64,000 nucleotides of DNA, taken from assembly GCA_028534125.1 (NCBI GenBank), contig CM052822.1, forward strand, positions 25,792,001-25,856,000, written 5' to 3'. Positions 6,212 to 62,208 of this stretch are shown here, piece by piece (the stretch's first letter is position 1; every line of letters starts with the position of its first letter). The DNA is from Lama glama (lineage: Eukaryota). Both the position numbers and the translations under genes were made by a program. The notes under the pieces were generated by a model. The model was not told the origin of the DNA. It searched no databases and worked only from the letters and a program-made list of their open reading frames with translations.

Positions 6212-6372
6212 NNNNNNNNNNNNNNNNNNNNNNNNNNNNNNNNNNNNNNNNNNNNNNNNNNNNNNNNNNNNNNNNNNNNNNNNNNNNNNNNNNNNNNNNN
6301 NNNNNNNNNNNNNNNNNNNNNNNNNNNNNNNNNNNNNNNNNNNNNNNNNNNNNNNNNNNNNNNNNNNNNNNN
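6212..6372. other. Assembly gap (N run)
   Basis: Run of N. Confidence 1.
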
Positions 6373-16624: not shown

Positions 16625-17440
16625 TCTTTTTTTTTAATTTAAGTGTTAGTTTCTGGTATACAGCATAGTGATTCAGTTATACATATATATTTTCTTTTTT
16701 GTTATAGGTTATTACAAGATATTGCCTATGGTTCCATATGCTATCCAGTAGGAACCTCATTGTTTATTTTATATACAGTAGTGTCTATCTGTTAACCCCA
16801 AGGTCCTAATTTATCCCTCCCTCCCCACTCCTGCTTTTGGTAACTGTAAGTTTGTGTTCTGTATCTGTGAGTCTGAGTCTGTTTCTGTTTTGTAAATAAG
16901 TTCATTTGTGTCATTTTTTTAGCTTCCACATGTAAGTTATATTATATAATATATGTCTTTCTATGTCTGACTTACTTCACTTAGTATGATAATCTNNNNN
17001 NNNNNNNNNNNNNNNNNNNNNNNNNNNNNNNNNNNNNNNNNNNNNNNNNNNNNNNNNNNNNNNNNNNNNNNNNNNNNNNNNNNNNNNNNNNNNNNNNNNN
17101 NNNNNNNNNNNNNNNNNNNNNNNNNNNNNNNNNNNNNNNNNNNNNNNNNNNNNNTGCATGAGTCTTTTACAATTAGAGTTTTCTCCAAATATATGCCCAG
17201 GAGTGGGGTTGCTGGATCATATGGTAAGTTTATTTAAAGTTTTTTGAGGAATCTCCATACTGTTTTCCATAGGGGCTGCACCAAATTCCATTCCCGGTGA
17301 AAGTGTAGGAGGGTTCCCTTTTTTCCACACCCTCTCCAGCATTTGTTGTTTGTGGACTTTTTAATGATGTTCATTTTGACTGGAGTGAAGTGATACCTCG
17401 TTGTAGTTTTGATTTGCATTTCTCTGATAATTAGCAATAT
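16625..17440 (-). mobile_element. Young L1, 5'-truncated: 3' UTR plus ORF2 C-terminal (Cys-rich) fragment; spans an assembly gap
   Basis: ORF 17437-17234 [21 protein letters not shown]...[20 protein letters not shown]...[16 protein letters not shown] is the L1 ORF2 C-terminus; poly-T and 3' UTR at 16625-16995. Confidence 0.95.
16996..17154. other. Assembly gap (N run)
   Basis: Run of N. Confidence 1.
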
Positions 17441-46735: not shown

Positions 46736-48777
46736 GATCCTTTTTGGTTGTGAAAATTAGAAGATTACATTGCAGCATCAATAGCATTGTGCCCCAATCA
46801 CTGTTGGAGCTCAGAACAGGATAGATTTCCTTCTTTCCTTACAAACTTTCTTCCTCAGCAGAACAAATTAGTTTTTCCTGATTTAACAAATATGCATTCA
46901 TATTTTTATTATGTGTAAGTTATTACTTTAGGTTTCATAAGAGGATCAAGGATAAATGAGATGTCTTATTAGAAGATCCTGTGGGCCAAATATTCATACA
47001 GAGAGACTGATACACACCCAGAAGTCTAACCCAAAACAAAGTATTAATTTCTTTCATAGAGGGATGAAGTGATAAGGAAATATAATCCATATTTTGGGTT
47101 CTGAAGATTTGTTCAAAATGCATTTGTGACTTATTACATCGCTAACCACTGATTCCAAGTGGAATCTTTGAGATCAGAATGGAGACTGTCCTTAGGGTAT
47201 GAAACTGTCTGTGTCTATCTTTTTAACAACTAGTTCATTTCATGATTCTATTATGGTAAAGGTAGCTCTCTTCAAATTAGTGTTTATCTCAGTGGCCTTT
47301 TCTCATTATTCACAATCTTGTATTTCTTTGTGTTGTGGATCATGATATATTCTCTAGCTCATTTTGGTTTCTTTAGAGTGACTGGATAGAAATTGGTTAG
47401 GTAACCAATACAATCCATGTCTCTTTCTATGTTAGATAACAAAAACAAAAACAAAAACCCCCAAAACTGTCTTAAGGATGTCCGAAGCAAATTAAGTGTT
47501 ATCATTTTGCATTTTGATTGCTGTTCTTTATCAGAGATGTCAGTAGTGTTCAAAGTCTGGAGAATAGGTTTACACAGTGTTTTTATAGATTCCCCCTTCA
47601 TTGGGAAATATCAGTAATTTGTTTTTGCAAAATCATTCTGTTTCTGGTAACATGAGATACTTCATCTGGACTACTTATGCTTCAATAAGCTTCTTTCTTT
47701 TGTGTTTTTAAAATGTAAAGAGATGCATGTCTCTTTAATTGGTTGGTGCCCACCTCTACTTCTGGTGTCAAAATGAGCATGCTTGCTCTGCTCAGGGGTG
47801 AGGAATTCACTTGATTTTGTGTTTCTGCTACAAATAATTCTTCATTAGGGATCTCGAACTGGGGCTTTCATAAAACACAGAATTTCTTCCAAAGTAATTT
47901 AGTTGTTTCAATAAAACTTGATAAGCTCATCCATGGGTAAGCCATAACCAGGGTTTTGATGGCACAGTGAGATTTAGTAGAGGGGGTCTTAGGAACCAGG
48001 AGACCACGCTCCAGTCCATCCACTCTTTCATCTAAGTTTCTCATGTTTAAGAAGCCTTAAATCTTAAATCAGTTTTGTGAATCTGTTTTCATTTTTGTCC
48101 TCAATCTGGCAATGTGATATGCTTTGTCTGGACTGTTTCATATCAAGAAGCTTCTTTTGTGTTTTAAAAATAAAAGGATGAGTATGCATTGCATATGTGG
48201 AGCAATTAGTTGGTATTACTCTCTTAGTTTGGGCAGGGAAGGCAGACTGTCAGCATTGGCAAACTGTTCAGATTCTTTTTCATGCCAACTTGCAATTTGT
48301 GACAGTGCCACGGTTTTATCAGGAGGATTTTATTGAGCTTTGAAAATGACTATTTCTTGACCTAGCTAGGTAGATACTTGCCTGGAGTCATAAAACTGAT
48401 TCTTCTTCAAATATTTTTCCATGAGGATACTTGGTATAATAATTTAGGAAGCTCAGAGTGAAATAGATATTGTCACATTACCAGTAATCATGGAAGGATT
48501 TGGCATATAGAGTTTGCTATAGAGGTAGGGAAATAATGACATAGAAAATCTGAATGGACACACCCTGTTTTAGTTGATGAGATAGGAGTGGAACTAGTTG
48601 ACTAAAATAAAATAAAAATTCAATCCCCAAACAGTGAGGAACTTGAAACATTGAAATTTCTGATCCCAAAACACTGTTTGGGGAACTGTACTTCAGCCCC
48701 AGAGCATGAGAGTAGAAGGGGAGCAAATTGTGGAGGGAGACTGTAGTACATATGGGTTTAAGAACTGAATTCTGCAA

Positions 48778-48880
48778 AATGAACAAGAATATGAAAAGGA
48801 ATATATATATATGAATCACTATGCTGTACACCAGAAATAACATAACATTGTAAATCAACTATACTTCAGTAAAAAAAAAA
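48778..48880 (+). mobile_element. Very short young L1 3' end with poly(A)
   Basis: aagaatatgaaaaggaatatatatatatgaatcactatgctgtacaccagaaataacataacattgtaaatcaactatacttcagtaaaaaaaaaa; reverse complement of the elements at 53079 and 59245. Confidence 0.85.
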
Positions 48881-50099
48881 TTGTGATAAATGTATGAAGC
48901 CTTGTTACTGGATTTTGTGCCTGTGCTGAAGTATCTGTTGTCAAAATGTTAATCTTACCTTTAGCTTTATCTTTTGTTCTTTAACCTTGTCCTAAATTCT
49001 GTATCTTTTCCTTTGTTTTTAACCCATTTGAATTGCATGTATTTATATAAGTTACTTGAAACTCATTTTGGAAACAATAAGTAAATATATAAATTTGTAA
49101 ACAAAAAAAATGATTTCCAATTTCAAAGAGTAGATAATTTAGTTTGGAATTCAGGATTGATTCGTAGAAACTTGATTAATGGAATCTATGTCATATATTC
49201 AGAGCCCAGTTGCTGGAATGCAATAAGGGCTATGATGTGTGAAAGGAAATGAAATCCCTGAGATTGAGATGGTCAGAGGGGATTCCAAGGAAGATAATAA
49301 GCTTTGTTTATTCTTGAAGGGTAGATATAAGTTTGAAAGGTTGAAAGTAATTCATGGAAGACTATGACCACAAATTCCTGCAGTATGAATGACATGTTAA
49401 GGGAATCATGAGTAGATATATATTGAGCAAAAACTTTACATACTTTAAACTAAGTCAGAAATTTATCTTAGAATAAAAGTAATAATTATCAAAACTTTTT
49501 TTTAACCTCTTGCATTCTTGTTGGAGCAATACCAGGGTTTTGGAGGGGTTTGGGTTTTCTCCCTTGCTTATGTGTTCTCACAGAAGCCATTGTGACATGT
49601 TTAGGATAAGACATGTCAATTGATTTAAGCTGAGAATTTTAATTCATAAGACTTTGAAGAAAAAAGTAAAATACTATGTAATAACAAAGCCCTTAGGAAA
49701 AAAGGGTCATTGTTAGCCTGTGAATATTCAGGCAGTTCTCTATGAATATATAAATAGATAAGCAGATAAATAATTGATAGATAATCAGAAATAATTTTAT
49801 AAAATGGGATTATACTGTACATGCTTTAAAAATTCTATTCTTTATTATTTTTAGTGATATATAATTTCAAAATACAATTAAAAATTTACATGTCAGAGAA
49901 TTCAAAATGATACTTCTTTTCCTTGTCTAGTCATATCTCAAGCACCATGTTTCTCATAAACTTTAATATATATATGACTTTCATTTGTGTAGTGGCTGGG
50001 GGAGCCTTCATTTTTAATTTTCTAGGTTTGCCTGTGTAATTCCAATTTTACCCACAATGCTGCATTTATTCAGGTGTGGATTTTTTGAACTGTTAAAAA

Positions 50100-53020: not shown

Positions 53021-53222
53021 CTTTTGTGTGTGTGTCACTGGCTTCTTTTATTTTATTTTATTATTATTTTGAAGTGTCTTTTTTTTATTGAAGTACAGTC
53101 AGTTTACAATGTTGTGTCAATTTCTGGCATACAGCATAATGTTTCAGTCATACAAATACATACATATATTCATTTTCATATTCTTTTCCATTATAGATTA
53201 CTATAAGATACTGCATTATATT

Positions 53223-54133
53223 TTTTTCCACTGGCCACTGTTTATTCACTAATACCATTAAGTTGAACATAGAACTACCTTCTCTGAGACAGGTAGACTG
53301 CTGGGCTCCTCTGCATCTCTTGGCTGCTTTACAGAATCACATCCACACATCCTATTTTGAGAACATGAAGCTGAACATCAGGCATGTGCTGGTGCTGAGT
53401 CCGCTGAGGGCCTGTGGAGAGGGGCCCACCATGCAGATTTTGAGTCATACCAGCAAAAACACTGAGCACTGGCTCCACATGAGAATCTGTCTGAGAGACC
53501 TGTGGAGAAAATACAACACCTGGAAGGCTGATATACTGAGAGCTTTTCAGCTGACTCTTTAAAGCTTCAGACATGAGTTTATGCTCATTTCCAGGATGTA
53601 CAAGTGTATCACTGGTAGCGTTATCTACACGTTTCCTCTCCACTGTGCCAGAATGAAGAACCATAGGCTGTTGGAGCACAGTTTCCATTCTCTGTGATTT
53701 TTCAGTAGTTGCTTGAAGAGAACATGGGTTCAACTGTGGAATACTGGTCTGTATTACTGAAGGCTGCCCAAGCTGCTGAAATACTTGCTGAATTGGATGC
53801 TGAAGAATATTTGCTCTTCCAGAAGTCTGTGTCACCATAATTGGTACATTGACTTTATAAAGGTGACCGGATGCAGTCTGTAGTGTCACACCTGCTGGTA
53901 CATGAATAGGATAACCAGGTAAAGCAAAGTTTGCACTGGAGTTTGAGGTGCCCAGTTCTGCTGTGGTAAAACTGGGAAGAGTTCTACCAGCAGGAATAAC
54001 TACCGATGCTGTTGATGATTGCAATGTTTGGTGCAAGCTGTGTGGCAACTGAAAGGTGACCAGAGGTGAATGGACGCTATTTCTGAAGAAGTCTTCTGTG
54101 GCTTTAGATTGCAAAAGGATAGAAGTTCCAGTT
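53223..54133 (-). pseudogene. GTF2A1L: Processed, 5'-truncated retrocopy of GTF2A1L (ALF, TFIIA alpha/beta-like factor), covering about residues 48-326 of the parent plus ~50 nt of apparent intron, AATAAA and poly(A)
   Basis: ORF 54114-53329 (LQSKATEDFFRNS...GTSNSSANF...PGYPIHVPAGVTLQTASGHLYKVNVPIMV...YISLPGVVFSPQVSQT...QLHVLK) matches the mammalian GTF2A1L protein as I recall it, continuously across what are several parental exons. After a 1-nt frameshift at 53355-53358 the parental frame continues RMCGCDSVKQPRDAEEPSSLPVSEK. There is no ATG or N-terminal region I. A-tail at 53221-53227. Degenerate 15-bp TSD at 53208-53222 and 54134-54148. Confidence 0.95.
53241..53246 (-). terminator. Polyadenylation signal AATAAA captured in the GTF2A1L retrocopy
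   Basis: TTTATT on the + strand, with 13 nt between it and the start of the A-run at 53227 on the minus strand; it lies just after the TAA at 53260-53258. Confidence 0.75.
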
Positions 54134-54220
54134 ATACTGATCTATATTCTGTGCTATACAGAAGAAACTTGTTTATTTTACGTATAGTAGTTAGAAACGT
54201 TTTTAATGATCGCTTTTTTT

Positions 54221-54340
54221 GGCAGTGGCAGGGAGAGAGGCAATTAGATTTATTTATTTTTAGAGGAGATACTGGGAATAGAACCCAGGACCTCATGCAT
54301 GCAAAGCATGCACTCTACCAGTTGAGCTATACCCTTCCCC
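54221..54340 (-). mobile_element. tRNA-Ala-derived SINE, Vic-1 type (camelid)
   Basis: Minus strand reads GGGGAAGGGTATAGCTCAACTGGTAGAGTGCATGCTTTGCATGCATGAGGTCCTGGGTTCTATTCCCAGTATCTCC, with an A box, a TGC anticodon-like loop, a B box and an A-rich tail. TSD taatgat(c/t)gcttttttt at 54204-54220 and 54341-54357 (16/17). Confidence 0.9.
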
Positions 54341-54884
54341 TAATGATTGCTTTTTTTAAGTTGACCAAAATGGCTAAGGTGGTACTGAACACATTCTGTA
54401 CTTTCCTAAACTTTTCTCTAGTAGGACTGAAAACATGCTGCTCCTCCTAATTGCCCTATGAAGTTCTAACAATGCTTTAAGATTCAGATTGAATCTCATC
54501 TCCTCCAAGAACACTTTCCATATCTCTCCAGCCAAAATTAATATTCTCGCTTAACCCTATAACATTTTGTGTTTCCATTATTATCATTTCCAAAGTCTGC
54601 CTTGAAGTAGAATTTTGTGTCTGTCCTGTAAGCTTCTGGAGAGTCAGCACTTCAGCTTGTAAAAGTTACATTTCCCTCATATCTAGAATAGTGTCTTGAA
54701 ATAGCAGGTAGTCAAAATACTTTTGTTGCTGATGATTTTGAAAGTTCTCTAATAACTAGTGAACCTTGTGTTTTTCTGGTTCTGGGTTGAAAAAAAGAAT
54801 AAAACGGCTTTTTCTCCCTCCAATCCCTTCCATTGTTCTTTATTATGCTTGAGGACAAGTTGTGCTTTAAAGGTGACTTCCAGG

Positions 54885-59244: not shown

Positions 59245-59765
59245 TTCTTTTATTTAAAATTTTTTTTAAAAATTGTGATCAGTTTACAATGTTATGTTAG
59301 TTTCTGGTGTACAGCACAATGTTTCAGTTATACAAATATATTTCTTTTCATATTCCGTTTCATTATAGGTTATTATGAGATACTGAATACAGTTCCATGT
59401 GCTATACAGGGAACAGTAAAACCTGTAACAGTAGAGCCTTATTGTTTTTCTGTTTTATATATAGTAGTTAGTATCTGCAAATCTCAAACCCCAACCTATC
59501 CCTTCCCATCCCAACTCCCCCACCTGCCTGATAACCATAAATTTGTTTCTATGTCTGTGAGTCTGTTTCTCTTTTGTAAATAAATTCAATTGTGTCTTTT
59601 TTAGATTCCGCATGTAAGTGATATCATATGGTATTTTTCTCTTTCTGGCTTATTTCACACAGAATGACAATTTTCAGTTCTATCCATGTTGTTGCAAATG
59701 ACATTATTTTATTCTTTTTTATGGGTGAGTAGTATTCCATGGTATATATATACCACAACTTCAAT
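59245..59765 (-). mobile_element. Young L1 3' UTR, 5'-truncated
   Basis: cagtttacaatgttatgttagtttctggtgtacagcac...cattataggttattatgagatactgaatacagttccatgtgctatacag...agattccgcatgtaagtgatatcatatggtattt...gagtagtattccatggtatatatataccaca. Confidence 0.9.
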
Positions 59766-61373: not shown

Positions 61374-62208
61374 CAGTAATCCCCCCTTTGTTTTGCTTTC
61401 CACAACTTCAGTTACTCACAGTCCGAAACTGCGATCTGAAAACATTGAGTGAAAAATTCCAGAAATAAACAATTCATAAATTTTAAGTTGTGTGCCATTC
61501 TGAGTAGCATGGTGAAATCTCAGGCCTTGCTGCTCCATCCTGTCTGGCATATGAATTATCCCTTTGCCCAGCGCATCCTACCTGTTAGTCACTTAGTAGC
61601 CCTCTAGGTTATCAGATCAACTGTCTCACTATAGCAATGCTTGTGTTCAAGTAACCCCTATTTCACTTAATAATGTCCCCAAATCATGAAAGTAGTGATG
61701 CTGGCAATTCGAATATACCAAAGAGCAGCTTAAAGTGCTTCCTTTGAGTGAAAAGGTGAAAGTTCTTGACTTAATAAGAAAAAAATTGTATGCTGAGGTT
61801 GCCAAGATCTGCAGCAAGGAAGAATCTTCTATGCTGAAATGATGAAGAAGGAAAAGGAAATTTATGCTAGTTTTGCTGTCGCACCTCAGACTGCAGACAT
61901 TATAGCCACAGTGCATGCTAAGTGCTTAGTTAAGATGGAAAAGGCATTGAATTTGTACAATGTGATATTTGAGAGAGAGGGAGAGAAACNNNNNNNNNNN
62001 NNNNNNNNNNNNNNNNNNNNNNNNNNNNNNNNNNNNNNNNNNNNNNNNNNNNNNNNNNNNNNNNNNNNNNNNNNNNNNNNNNNNNNNNNNNNNNNNNNNN
62101 NNNNNNNNNNNNNNNNNNNNNNNNNNNNNNNNNTTCAGTATTATCTGCAGATTCAGCCATCCACTGGGGATCTCAGAGTGTATTCCCCCTGGATAAGGGG
62201 GGCTACTC
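61374..62208 (+). mobile_element. Tigger2-family TcMar DNA transposon, internally deleted, with a transposase N-terminal remnant
   Basis: TA|cagtaatccccc ... ggataaggggggctactc|TA termini; degenerate transposase remnant KVLPLSEKVKVLDLIRKK...KKEKEIYASFAVAPQTA...KCLVKMEKALNL. Confidence 0.9.
61990..62133. other. Assembly gap (N run)
   Basis: Run of N. Confidence 1.

Follow-up and report, generated by a model that had tools for sequence, protein, structure and literature searches.

In the window analysed here, that is, the whole 64-kb stretch of Lama glama DNA, the minus strand carries at about 54117-53279 an intron-free copy of camelid GTF2A1L (ALF), which corresponds to Camelus residues about 47-326 of 478 and is a 5'-truncated, dead retrocopy of this testis transcription-factor gene. 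Beyond the large exon of its parent, the copy continues for 51 nt that, judged from other mammals, open the next intron, and it ends in a short run of A preceded by an AATAAA hexamer (Table 1). On the evidence of these sequence features, the best reading is that the template was probably an RNA that had been spliced upstream and then cleaved and polyadenylated within this intron.

Table 1. Features of the GTF2A1L retrocopy and its insertion site, listed along the minus strand in its 5' to 3' direction
Feature	Position	Strand	Basis
Upstream part of the target L1 3' end	54149-54203	-	Colinear with the L1 copy at 59255-59480(-)
Probable target-site duplication, 5' copy (AATATAGATCAGTAT), belonging to the 3' end of the older L1	54134-54148	-	12/15 match to the 3' copy
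19 nt (AACTGGAACTTCTATCCTT) separating the duplication from the first recognisable ALF codon	54115-54133	-	Sequence
ALF coding sequence without introns, Camelus residues about 47-326, parts of three exons	53279-54114	-	tblastn, Pfam TFIIA; exon borders inferred
A4 run in place of the A5 required in the parent (LKNR); 1-nt deletion and frameshift	53355-53358	-	Sequence, frame comparison
First 51 nt past the SEK exon, intron-derived (GTAGTT..., TAA stop in frame at 53260-53258)	53228-53278	-	Threading of read-through tails from other mammals
AATAAA poly(A) signal, 13 nt ahead of the A-run	53241-53246	-	Sequence; chance about 3%
A7, probable remnant of a poly(A) tail, of which the final 1-2 A could be part of the duplication	53221-53227	-	Sequence
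Probable 3' copy of the target-site duplication (AATATAATGCAGTAT)	53208-53222	-	12/15 match to the 5' copy
Downstream part of the target element: remainder of the older L1 3' end, including the A-tail of the L1 itself	53079-53207	-	Alignment to 59255-59480(-) and 48700-48890(+)

The identification as a GTF2A1L retrocopy, made in a first-pass annotation of this DNA, is borne out by tblastn comparison with the ALF proteins of Camelus dromedarius (P0121; 93.8% protein identity) and Vicugna pacos (P0122; 91.2%), by a Pfam match of the region (PF03153, TFIIA large-subunit family; E 2.9e-21) and by the missing introns, and all letters quoted in that annotation were found in the places it gave for them. 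The nearest proteins are TFIIA-alpha/beta-like factor, ALF, the GTF2A1L product. The copy contains the longest open frame of the window (261 codons), and a single 1-nt loss switches the frame after LHVLK and before MCGCDSVK. In solved TFIIA structures (1NVP and others), the homologues of ALF residues 5-54 form the alpha N-terminal helices and those of residues 410-478 the beta part; a functional large subunit requires both, and the copy, which is frameshifted and holds only residues 47-326, encodes the unstructured linker and neither structured TFIIA domain. It shows no sign of a new function and is non-functional. With the start codon and structured domain both missing, it was dead on arrival, the frameshift having come later. 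The N-terminal TFIIA-gamma-binding helices, which the annotation had included in the encoded protein, are absent from the copy, truncated as it is at about codon 47, and would be encoded by a full-length RNA ending at the same place. Since the retrocopy starts at about residue 47, it is silent on the 5' part of its template and on the coding start of that template.

The exon borders of the parental gene were read from other mammals. Short genomic ORFs of several species pass from an intron straight into GHLYKV (P0055, a primate-like Logan ORF of which only the end was used, P0063 and P0094) and leave the exon after SEK, while exon-skipping models begin or rejoin at GTSNSS and LWETKV (P0070, P0039, P0194, and P0001). 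Because the window is continuous across TTAEL/GTSNSS and QTAS/GHLYKV, both of which are exon borders in other mammals, at least two parental introns are gone; the earlier statement that all upstream introns are absent holds for at least these two, at the borders before GTSNSS and GHLYKV. A motif scan and tblastn searches of the 64-kb window with full-length ALF and a stonin-ALF read-through protein found no further pieces of ALF or STON1, and with no second ALF or STON1 exon within 64 kb, the retrocopy sits apart from the parental gene. Runs of N occupy 6212-6372, 16996-17154, and 61990-62133 of the window.

At its 3' end, the similarity to ALF stops exactly at residue 326 of the Camelus protein (P0121), the K of PVSEK, at position 53279, as had first been noticed, and the mammalian ORFs leave the large GTF2A1L exon at the same SEK, codon 326, in agreement with the exon end that the annotation had given for the human gene. 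In the Vicugna pacos protein (P0122), V and not D opens the next exon (SEKVSNSQ), which by chance prolongs the tblastn match into the intron codon GTA. Following ...CCT GTC TCA GAG AAG (end at 53279), the window reads GTA GTT CTA TGT TCA ACT TAA, with the stop at 53260-53258, and the 51 nt past PVSEK (GTAGTTCTATGT...) are the start of the next intron as seen in other mammals. This comparison rests on the protein-level read-through of other mammals: translated tails were fitted to the DNA of the window by threading that tolerates frameshifts, and the match counts are upper bounds, codon choice not being fixed by the protein. The tail of the window after SEK, VVLCST followed by a stop, resembles those read from genomic ORFs of whale (VVLCSI), carnivores (VALCSS, VVLCSA, and VVLC) and ruminants (VVLCLTY(WY)), each likewise closed by a stop, and that of the sloth RefSeq model XP_037684759.1 (VVLCLSIGIRGQTVAGD, then a stop). 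The ruminant tail threads onto the window at up to 28/30 nt, the whale tail at up to 20/21 nt and the sloth tail at up to 44/54 nt, the last with one 1-nt indel and reaching 53227, the first A of the run. The ORFs of whales, carnivores, and ruminants and the sloth model leave the exon as ...SEK-VVLC..., which supports the proposal that the 51 nt derive from the parental intron.

The annotation had further suggested checking whether the intronic stop and the AATAAA are conserved across mammals. An early in-frame stop after SEK is present in all species seen, whereas the hexamer is not universal, as sloth appears to have GACAAA-like sequence at its position; in the Logan sequences P0094 and P0100, the stop codons fall on the TAA inside the hexamer. 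Metagenome contigs yielded no mammalian ALF DNA (large-exon alignment, 165 pattern matches, 0 ALF-related), and a search of the same kind of contigs for exon-intron junction DNA returned 5 matches, all of them chance microbial ones.

The arrangement of the 3' end argues for a polyadenylated template. An AATAAA placed 13 nt before an A-run has textbook spacing, and the probability of finding the hexamer by chance 10-30 nt upstream of a given point is about 3% (for a 21-26-nt span in this AT-rich window of 37% G+C). The A7 adjoins intron-derived sequence on one side and the 3' duplication with the L1 flank on the other, and its shortness is expected of an old copy. The hexamer, the A-run, and the abutting duplication thus fit the polyadenylated intronic 3' end that the annotation had proposed. 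As read from the sequence, the 5' splice site AAG/GTAGTT mismatches U1 at positions +4 and +5, and weak 5' splice sites favour intronic polyadenylation. The AATAAA lies 32 nt from this splice site; since a poly(A) signal at so short a distance is normally kept silent by U1 snRNP on the 5' splice site, a rare event is favoured over a regular isoform.

The formation of the retrocopy can be explained by the following steps, each of them conditional on this reading: (i) a germline ALF RNA would have lost its upstream introns and yet ended 51 nt into the intron after the large exon; (ii) this end, 13 nt past the AATAAA and bearing an A-tail, would most likely have been produced by intronic cleavage and polyadenylation, forming a composite terminal exon, with the weak 5' splice site helping the process; (iii) on the camelid stem, reverse transcription would have placed a copy of the RNA within the 3' end of an older L1, as happens with L1-mediated processed pseudogenes; and (iv) reverse transcription would have halted early, leaving a copy that begins near codon 47. 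The A-run would accordingly have been added after transcription, and the template RNA would have come from germ cells or the early embryo. Several points speak against this explanation, among them that the A-run is only 7 long, that the duplication is imperfect (12/15) and that the 19-nt 5' junction is unaccounted for; among camelid protein models, none ends at SEK plus intron codons.

The main rival explanation, which we regard as unlikely, is internal priming, in which L1 reverse transcriptase began on an intron-encoded A-run of a partly spliced or intron-retaining ALF RNA. The camelid intron may encode such a run at this point, and the run seen in the window is short (7), but the threaded sloth sequence reads GGN GAY and then a stop (TRR) where the window A-run begins, and with these pyrimidines there is no A-run in sloth. 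The sloth and colugo RefSeq models read into the intron, and unspliced forms may be common; against this, it is general knowledge that L1-mediated copies overwhelmingly begin on genuine poly(A) tails. Internal priming also requires the AATAAA at its textbook distance to be a coincidence of about 3%, and polyadenylation in the intron remains the reading that we prefer.

A different matter is whether the template belonged to a regular, functional isoform. The annotation had envisaged an 'alpha-only' ALF, and its placement of the Taspase-type site and the beta region downstream of SEK is correct, these lying at residues 348-351 (QIDG in Camelus, QVDG in Vicugna) and 410-478, respectively, as against 326. 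Judged from the sequence, a full-length RNA ending here would encode residues 1-326 plus VVLCST and hence the helices, no cleavage site and no beta part. That conserved and regulated intronic polyadenylation in germ cells regularly supplies such a protein, with helices and without the beta part, is in our view improbable. Between sloth and camelids, the first ~50 nt of the intron seem to be conserved (at most 44/54 nt), and the early in-frame stop is found in all species seen, but sloth appears to have no hexamer; three RefSeq models end in the intron after SEK, but the colugo models X1 and X2 both end in SEKV and a stop, which suggests an annotation limit; and the weak 5' splice site would favour such an isoform, but one retrocopy can stem from a rare RNA, and this one, being without its 5' part, does not record the coding start of the template. 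Our literature search found no paper on the isoform, and nothing relevant on GTF2A1L polyadenylation or isoforms or on retrocopies with intronic polyadenylation. The rat RefSeq isoform X4 (P0056; 288 aa) ends inside the large exon (...QYISLPELYF) and is unrelated to the SEK site. It would be bolder still to suppose that the intron harbours a conserved, weakly used poly(A) site yielding a germ-cell ALF of ~332 residues, with the gamma-binding helices and neither Taspase site nor beta domain, that acts as a natural regulator or decoy in TFIIA assembly, with the retrocopy as its oldest record, from before the tribe split; we hold this to be improbable, and any function of an 'alpha-only' ALF protein is speculation.

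The surroundings of the retrocopy bear on whether its 3' end is original. Both flanks come from a single older L1, of which they form the 3' end; they are colinear on the two sides of the insert and meet at one L1 point, which indicates that the retrocopy is nested in this L1 and that the L1 was the target rather than a later arrival. On the downstream side, 53216-53079 gives a good alignment with the L1 3'-end copies at 59255-59480(-) and 48700-48890(+), and on the upstream side the flank follows the copy at 59255-59480(-) colinearly as far as ...CTGTATAGCACA; these two copies are further L1 3'-end fragments of the family of the target element and served as references. The flanking 15-mers AATATAGATCAGTAT (54148-54134) and AATATAATGCAGTAT (53222-53208) are identical at 12/15, and both correspond to one L1 segment (...TATTCAGTAT). 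They likely, though not certainly, represent an imperfect target-site duplication abutting the A-run, the L1 being self-similar at the 5' flank, where MAFFT puts part of it elsewhere, so that the alignment of the duplication is not unique; the colinearity of the L1 flanks holds independently of the duplication. The 19 nt at 54133-54115, which may be decayed ALF codons 41-47 (KQLWETKV) or filler DNA, also resemble L1 GTATAACTGAAAC and match neither ALF nor the expected L1 position. The same old L1 contains a tRNA-derived SINE at 54221-54340(-), called by ARAGORN as tRNA-Ala (54263-54336) and flanked by a 17-nt duplication, AAAAAAAGC[A/G]ATCATTA, at 54341-54357 and 54204-54220 with one mismatch.

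Because the A7 lies directly between the ALF-derived sequence and the L1 target, the 3' end of the insert is original and was not cut later. It is very improbable that a longer retrocopy lost its 3' part by deletion or by L1 insertion and that the A-run is incidental: L1 sequence does begin right after the A-run, but the L1 pieces on the two sides form one colinear element that shares the duplicated 15-mer, with L1 as the target. A chimeric ALF-L1 copy arising by template switching was rejected, since L1 lies on both sides and is colinear. Finally, the idea that the insert is the parental GTF2A1L locus itself or a DNA-level duplicate, with which the retained exon-intron junction after SEK would agree, is to all intents ruled out by the two missing upstream introns, and also by the absence of N-terminal, C-terminal and STON1 exons from the 64 kb, the L1 flanks and duplication that border the insert, and an identity of just 91-94% to both camelid ALF proteins.

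The age of the retrocopy can be judged from its residues. At 13 of 13 sites that differ between Camelus and Vicugna ALF, the copy has the outgroup state (pig, hippo, and sperm whale), and at two further sites it carries the outgroup residues (ENATSDTL) where both camelids share the derived ENTTSDIL. It also carries many camelid-specific residues, e.g., ERKRV, SVFAGM, and PRDAEEP. The combination of ancestral and camelid-specific residues places its origin on the camelid stem, before the two living tribes split, and the retrocopy would thus predate the separation of the tribes.

Sequencing runs were compared through sampled words of the copy region (53150-54180). DNA runs of six organism codes contain 76-88% of these words, and a share of exactly 0.54 is present in each of four RNA-seq runs, which come from two studies and of which two carry the label reproductive system. 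The 54% found in RNA could consist of words shared with the parental ALF mRNA or could come from transcription of the pseudogene; that the share is identical in every run agrees with a fixed subset held in common, and 54% exceeds what would be expected from the protein divergence.

Intronic polyadenylation and composite terminal exons are reportedly the subject of a body of literature that includes Tian et al. 2007. What the present case has in common with such events is a weak 5' splice site, an AATAAA shortly downstream and an early stop, with a truncated product that would escape nonsense-mediated decay; it differs in that an unusually short distance (32 nt) separates the signal from the splice site and that use of the signal is inferred from the fossil only. 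With L1-mediated processed pseudogenes of germline-expressed genes, the copy shares intron loss, 5' truncation, an A-tail, a probable target-site duplication, a new site and decay by frameshift, whereas its 3' end lies 51 nt inside an internal intron and not in the normal 3' UTR of the gene. The sloth model XP_037684759.1 and the colugo models XP_008584562.1 and XP_008584564.1 offer a further parallel, as coding in them also runs from the SEK exon into the intron (EKVVLCLSIG... and SEKV with a stop, respectively); these RefSeq models are, however, automatic and may reflect limits of assembly or annotation, and the sloth one passes the camelid end point and appears to have no AATAAA there.

Alternative transcripts are known to leave 'genomic fossils' in the form of processed pseudogenes (Shemesh et al. 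2006, PNAS 103:1364, cited in PMC5470649), and retrocopies recording alternative 3' ends are an already known kind. As in such cases, the ALF retrocopy would record a variant of its parent, in splicing or at the 3' end, that lies outside annotation; here, in distinction, there is a single camelid case, and the variant is known from the retrocopy alone. What the present analysis adds to the annotation is that the copy lies in the 3' end of an older L1 and that the probable duplication abuts the A-run, so that the 3' end is intact.

In conclusion, the retrocopy is best taken as the fossil of a minor transcript and shows no new mechanism or protein function. For teaching, it offers a clear case of a retrocopy that lies within an L1 and whose origin can be dated. 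If our reading is true, ancestral camelid germ cells produced an ALF RNA whose 3' end lay within the intron after the large exon, and the retrocopy would define a precise site to examine in testis 3'-end data of any mammal.
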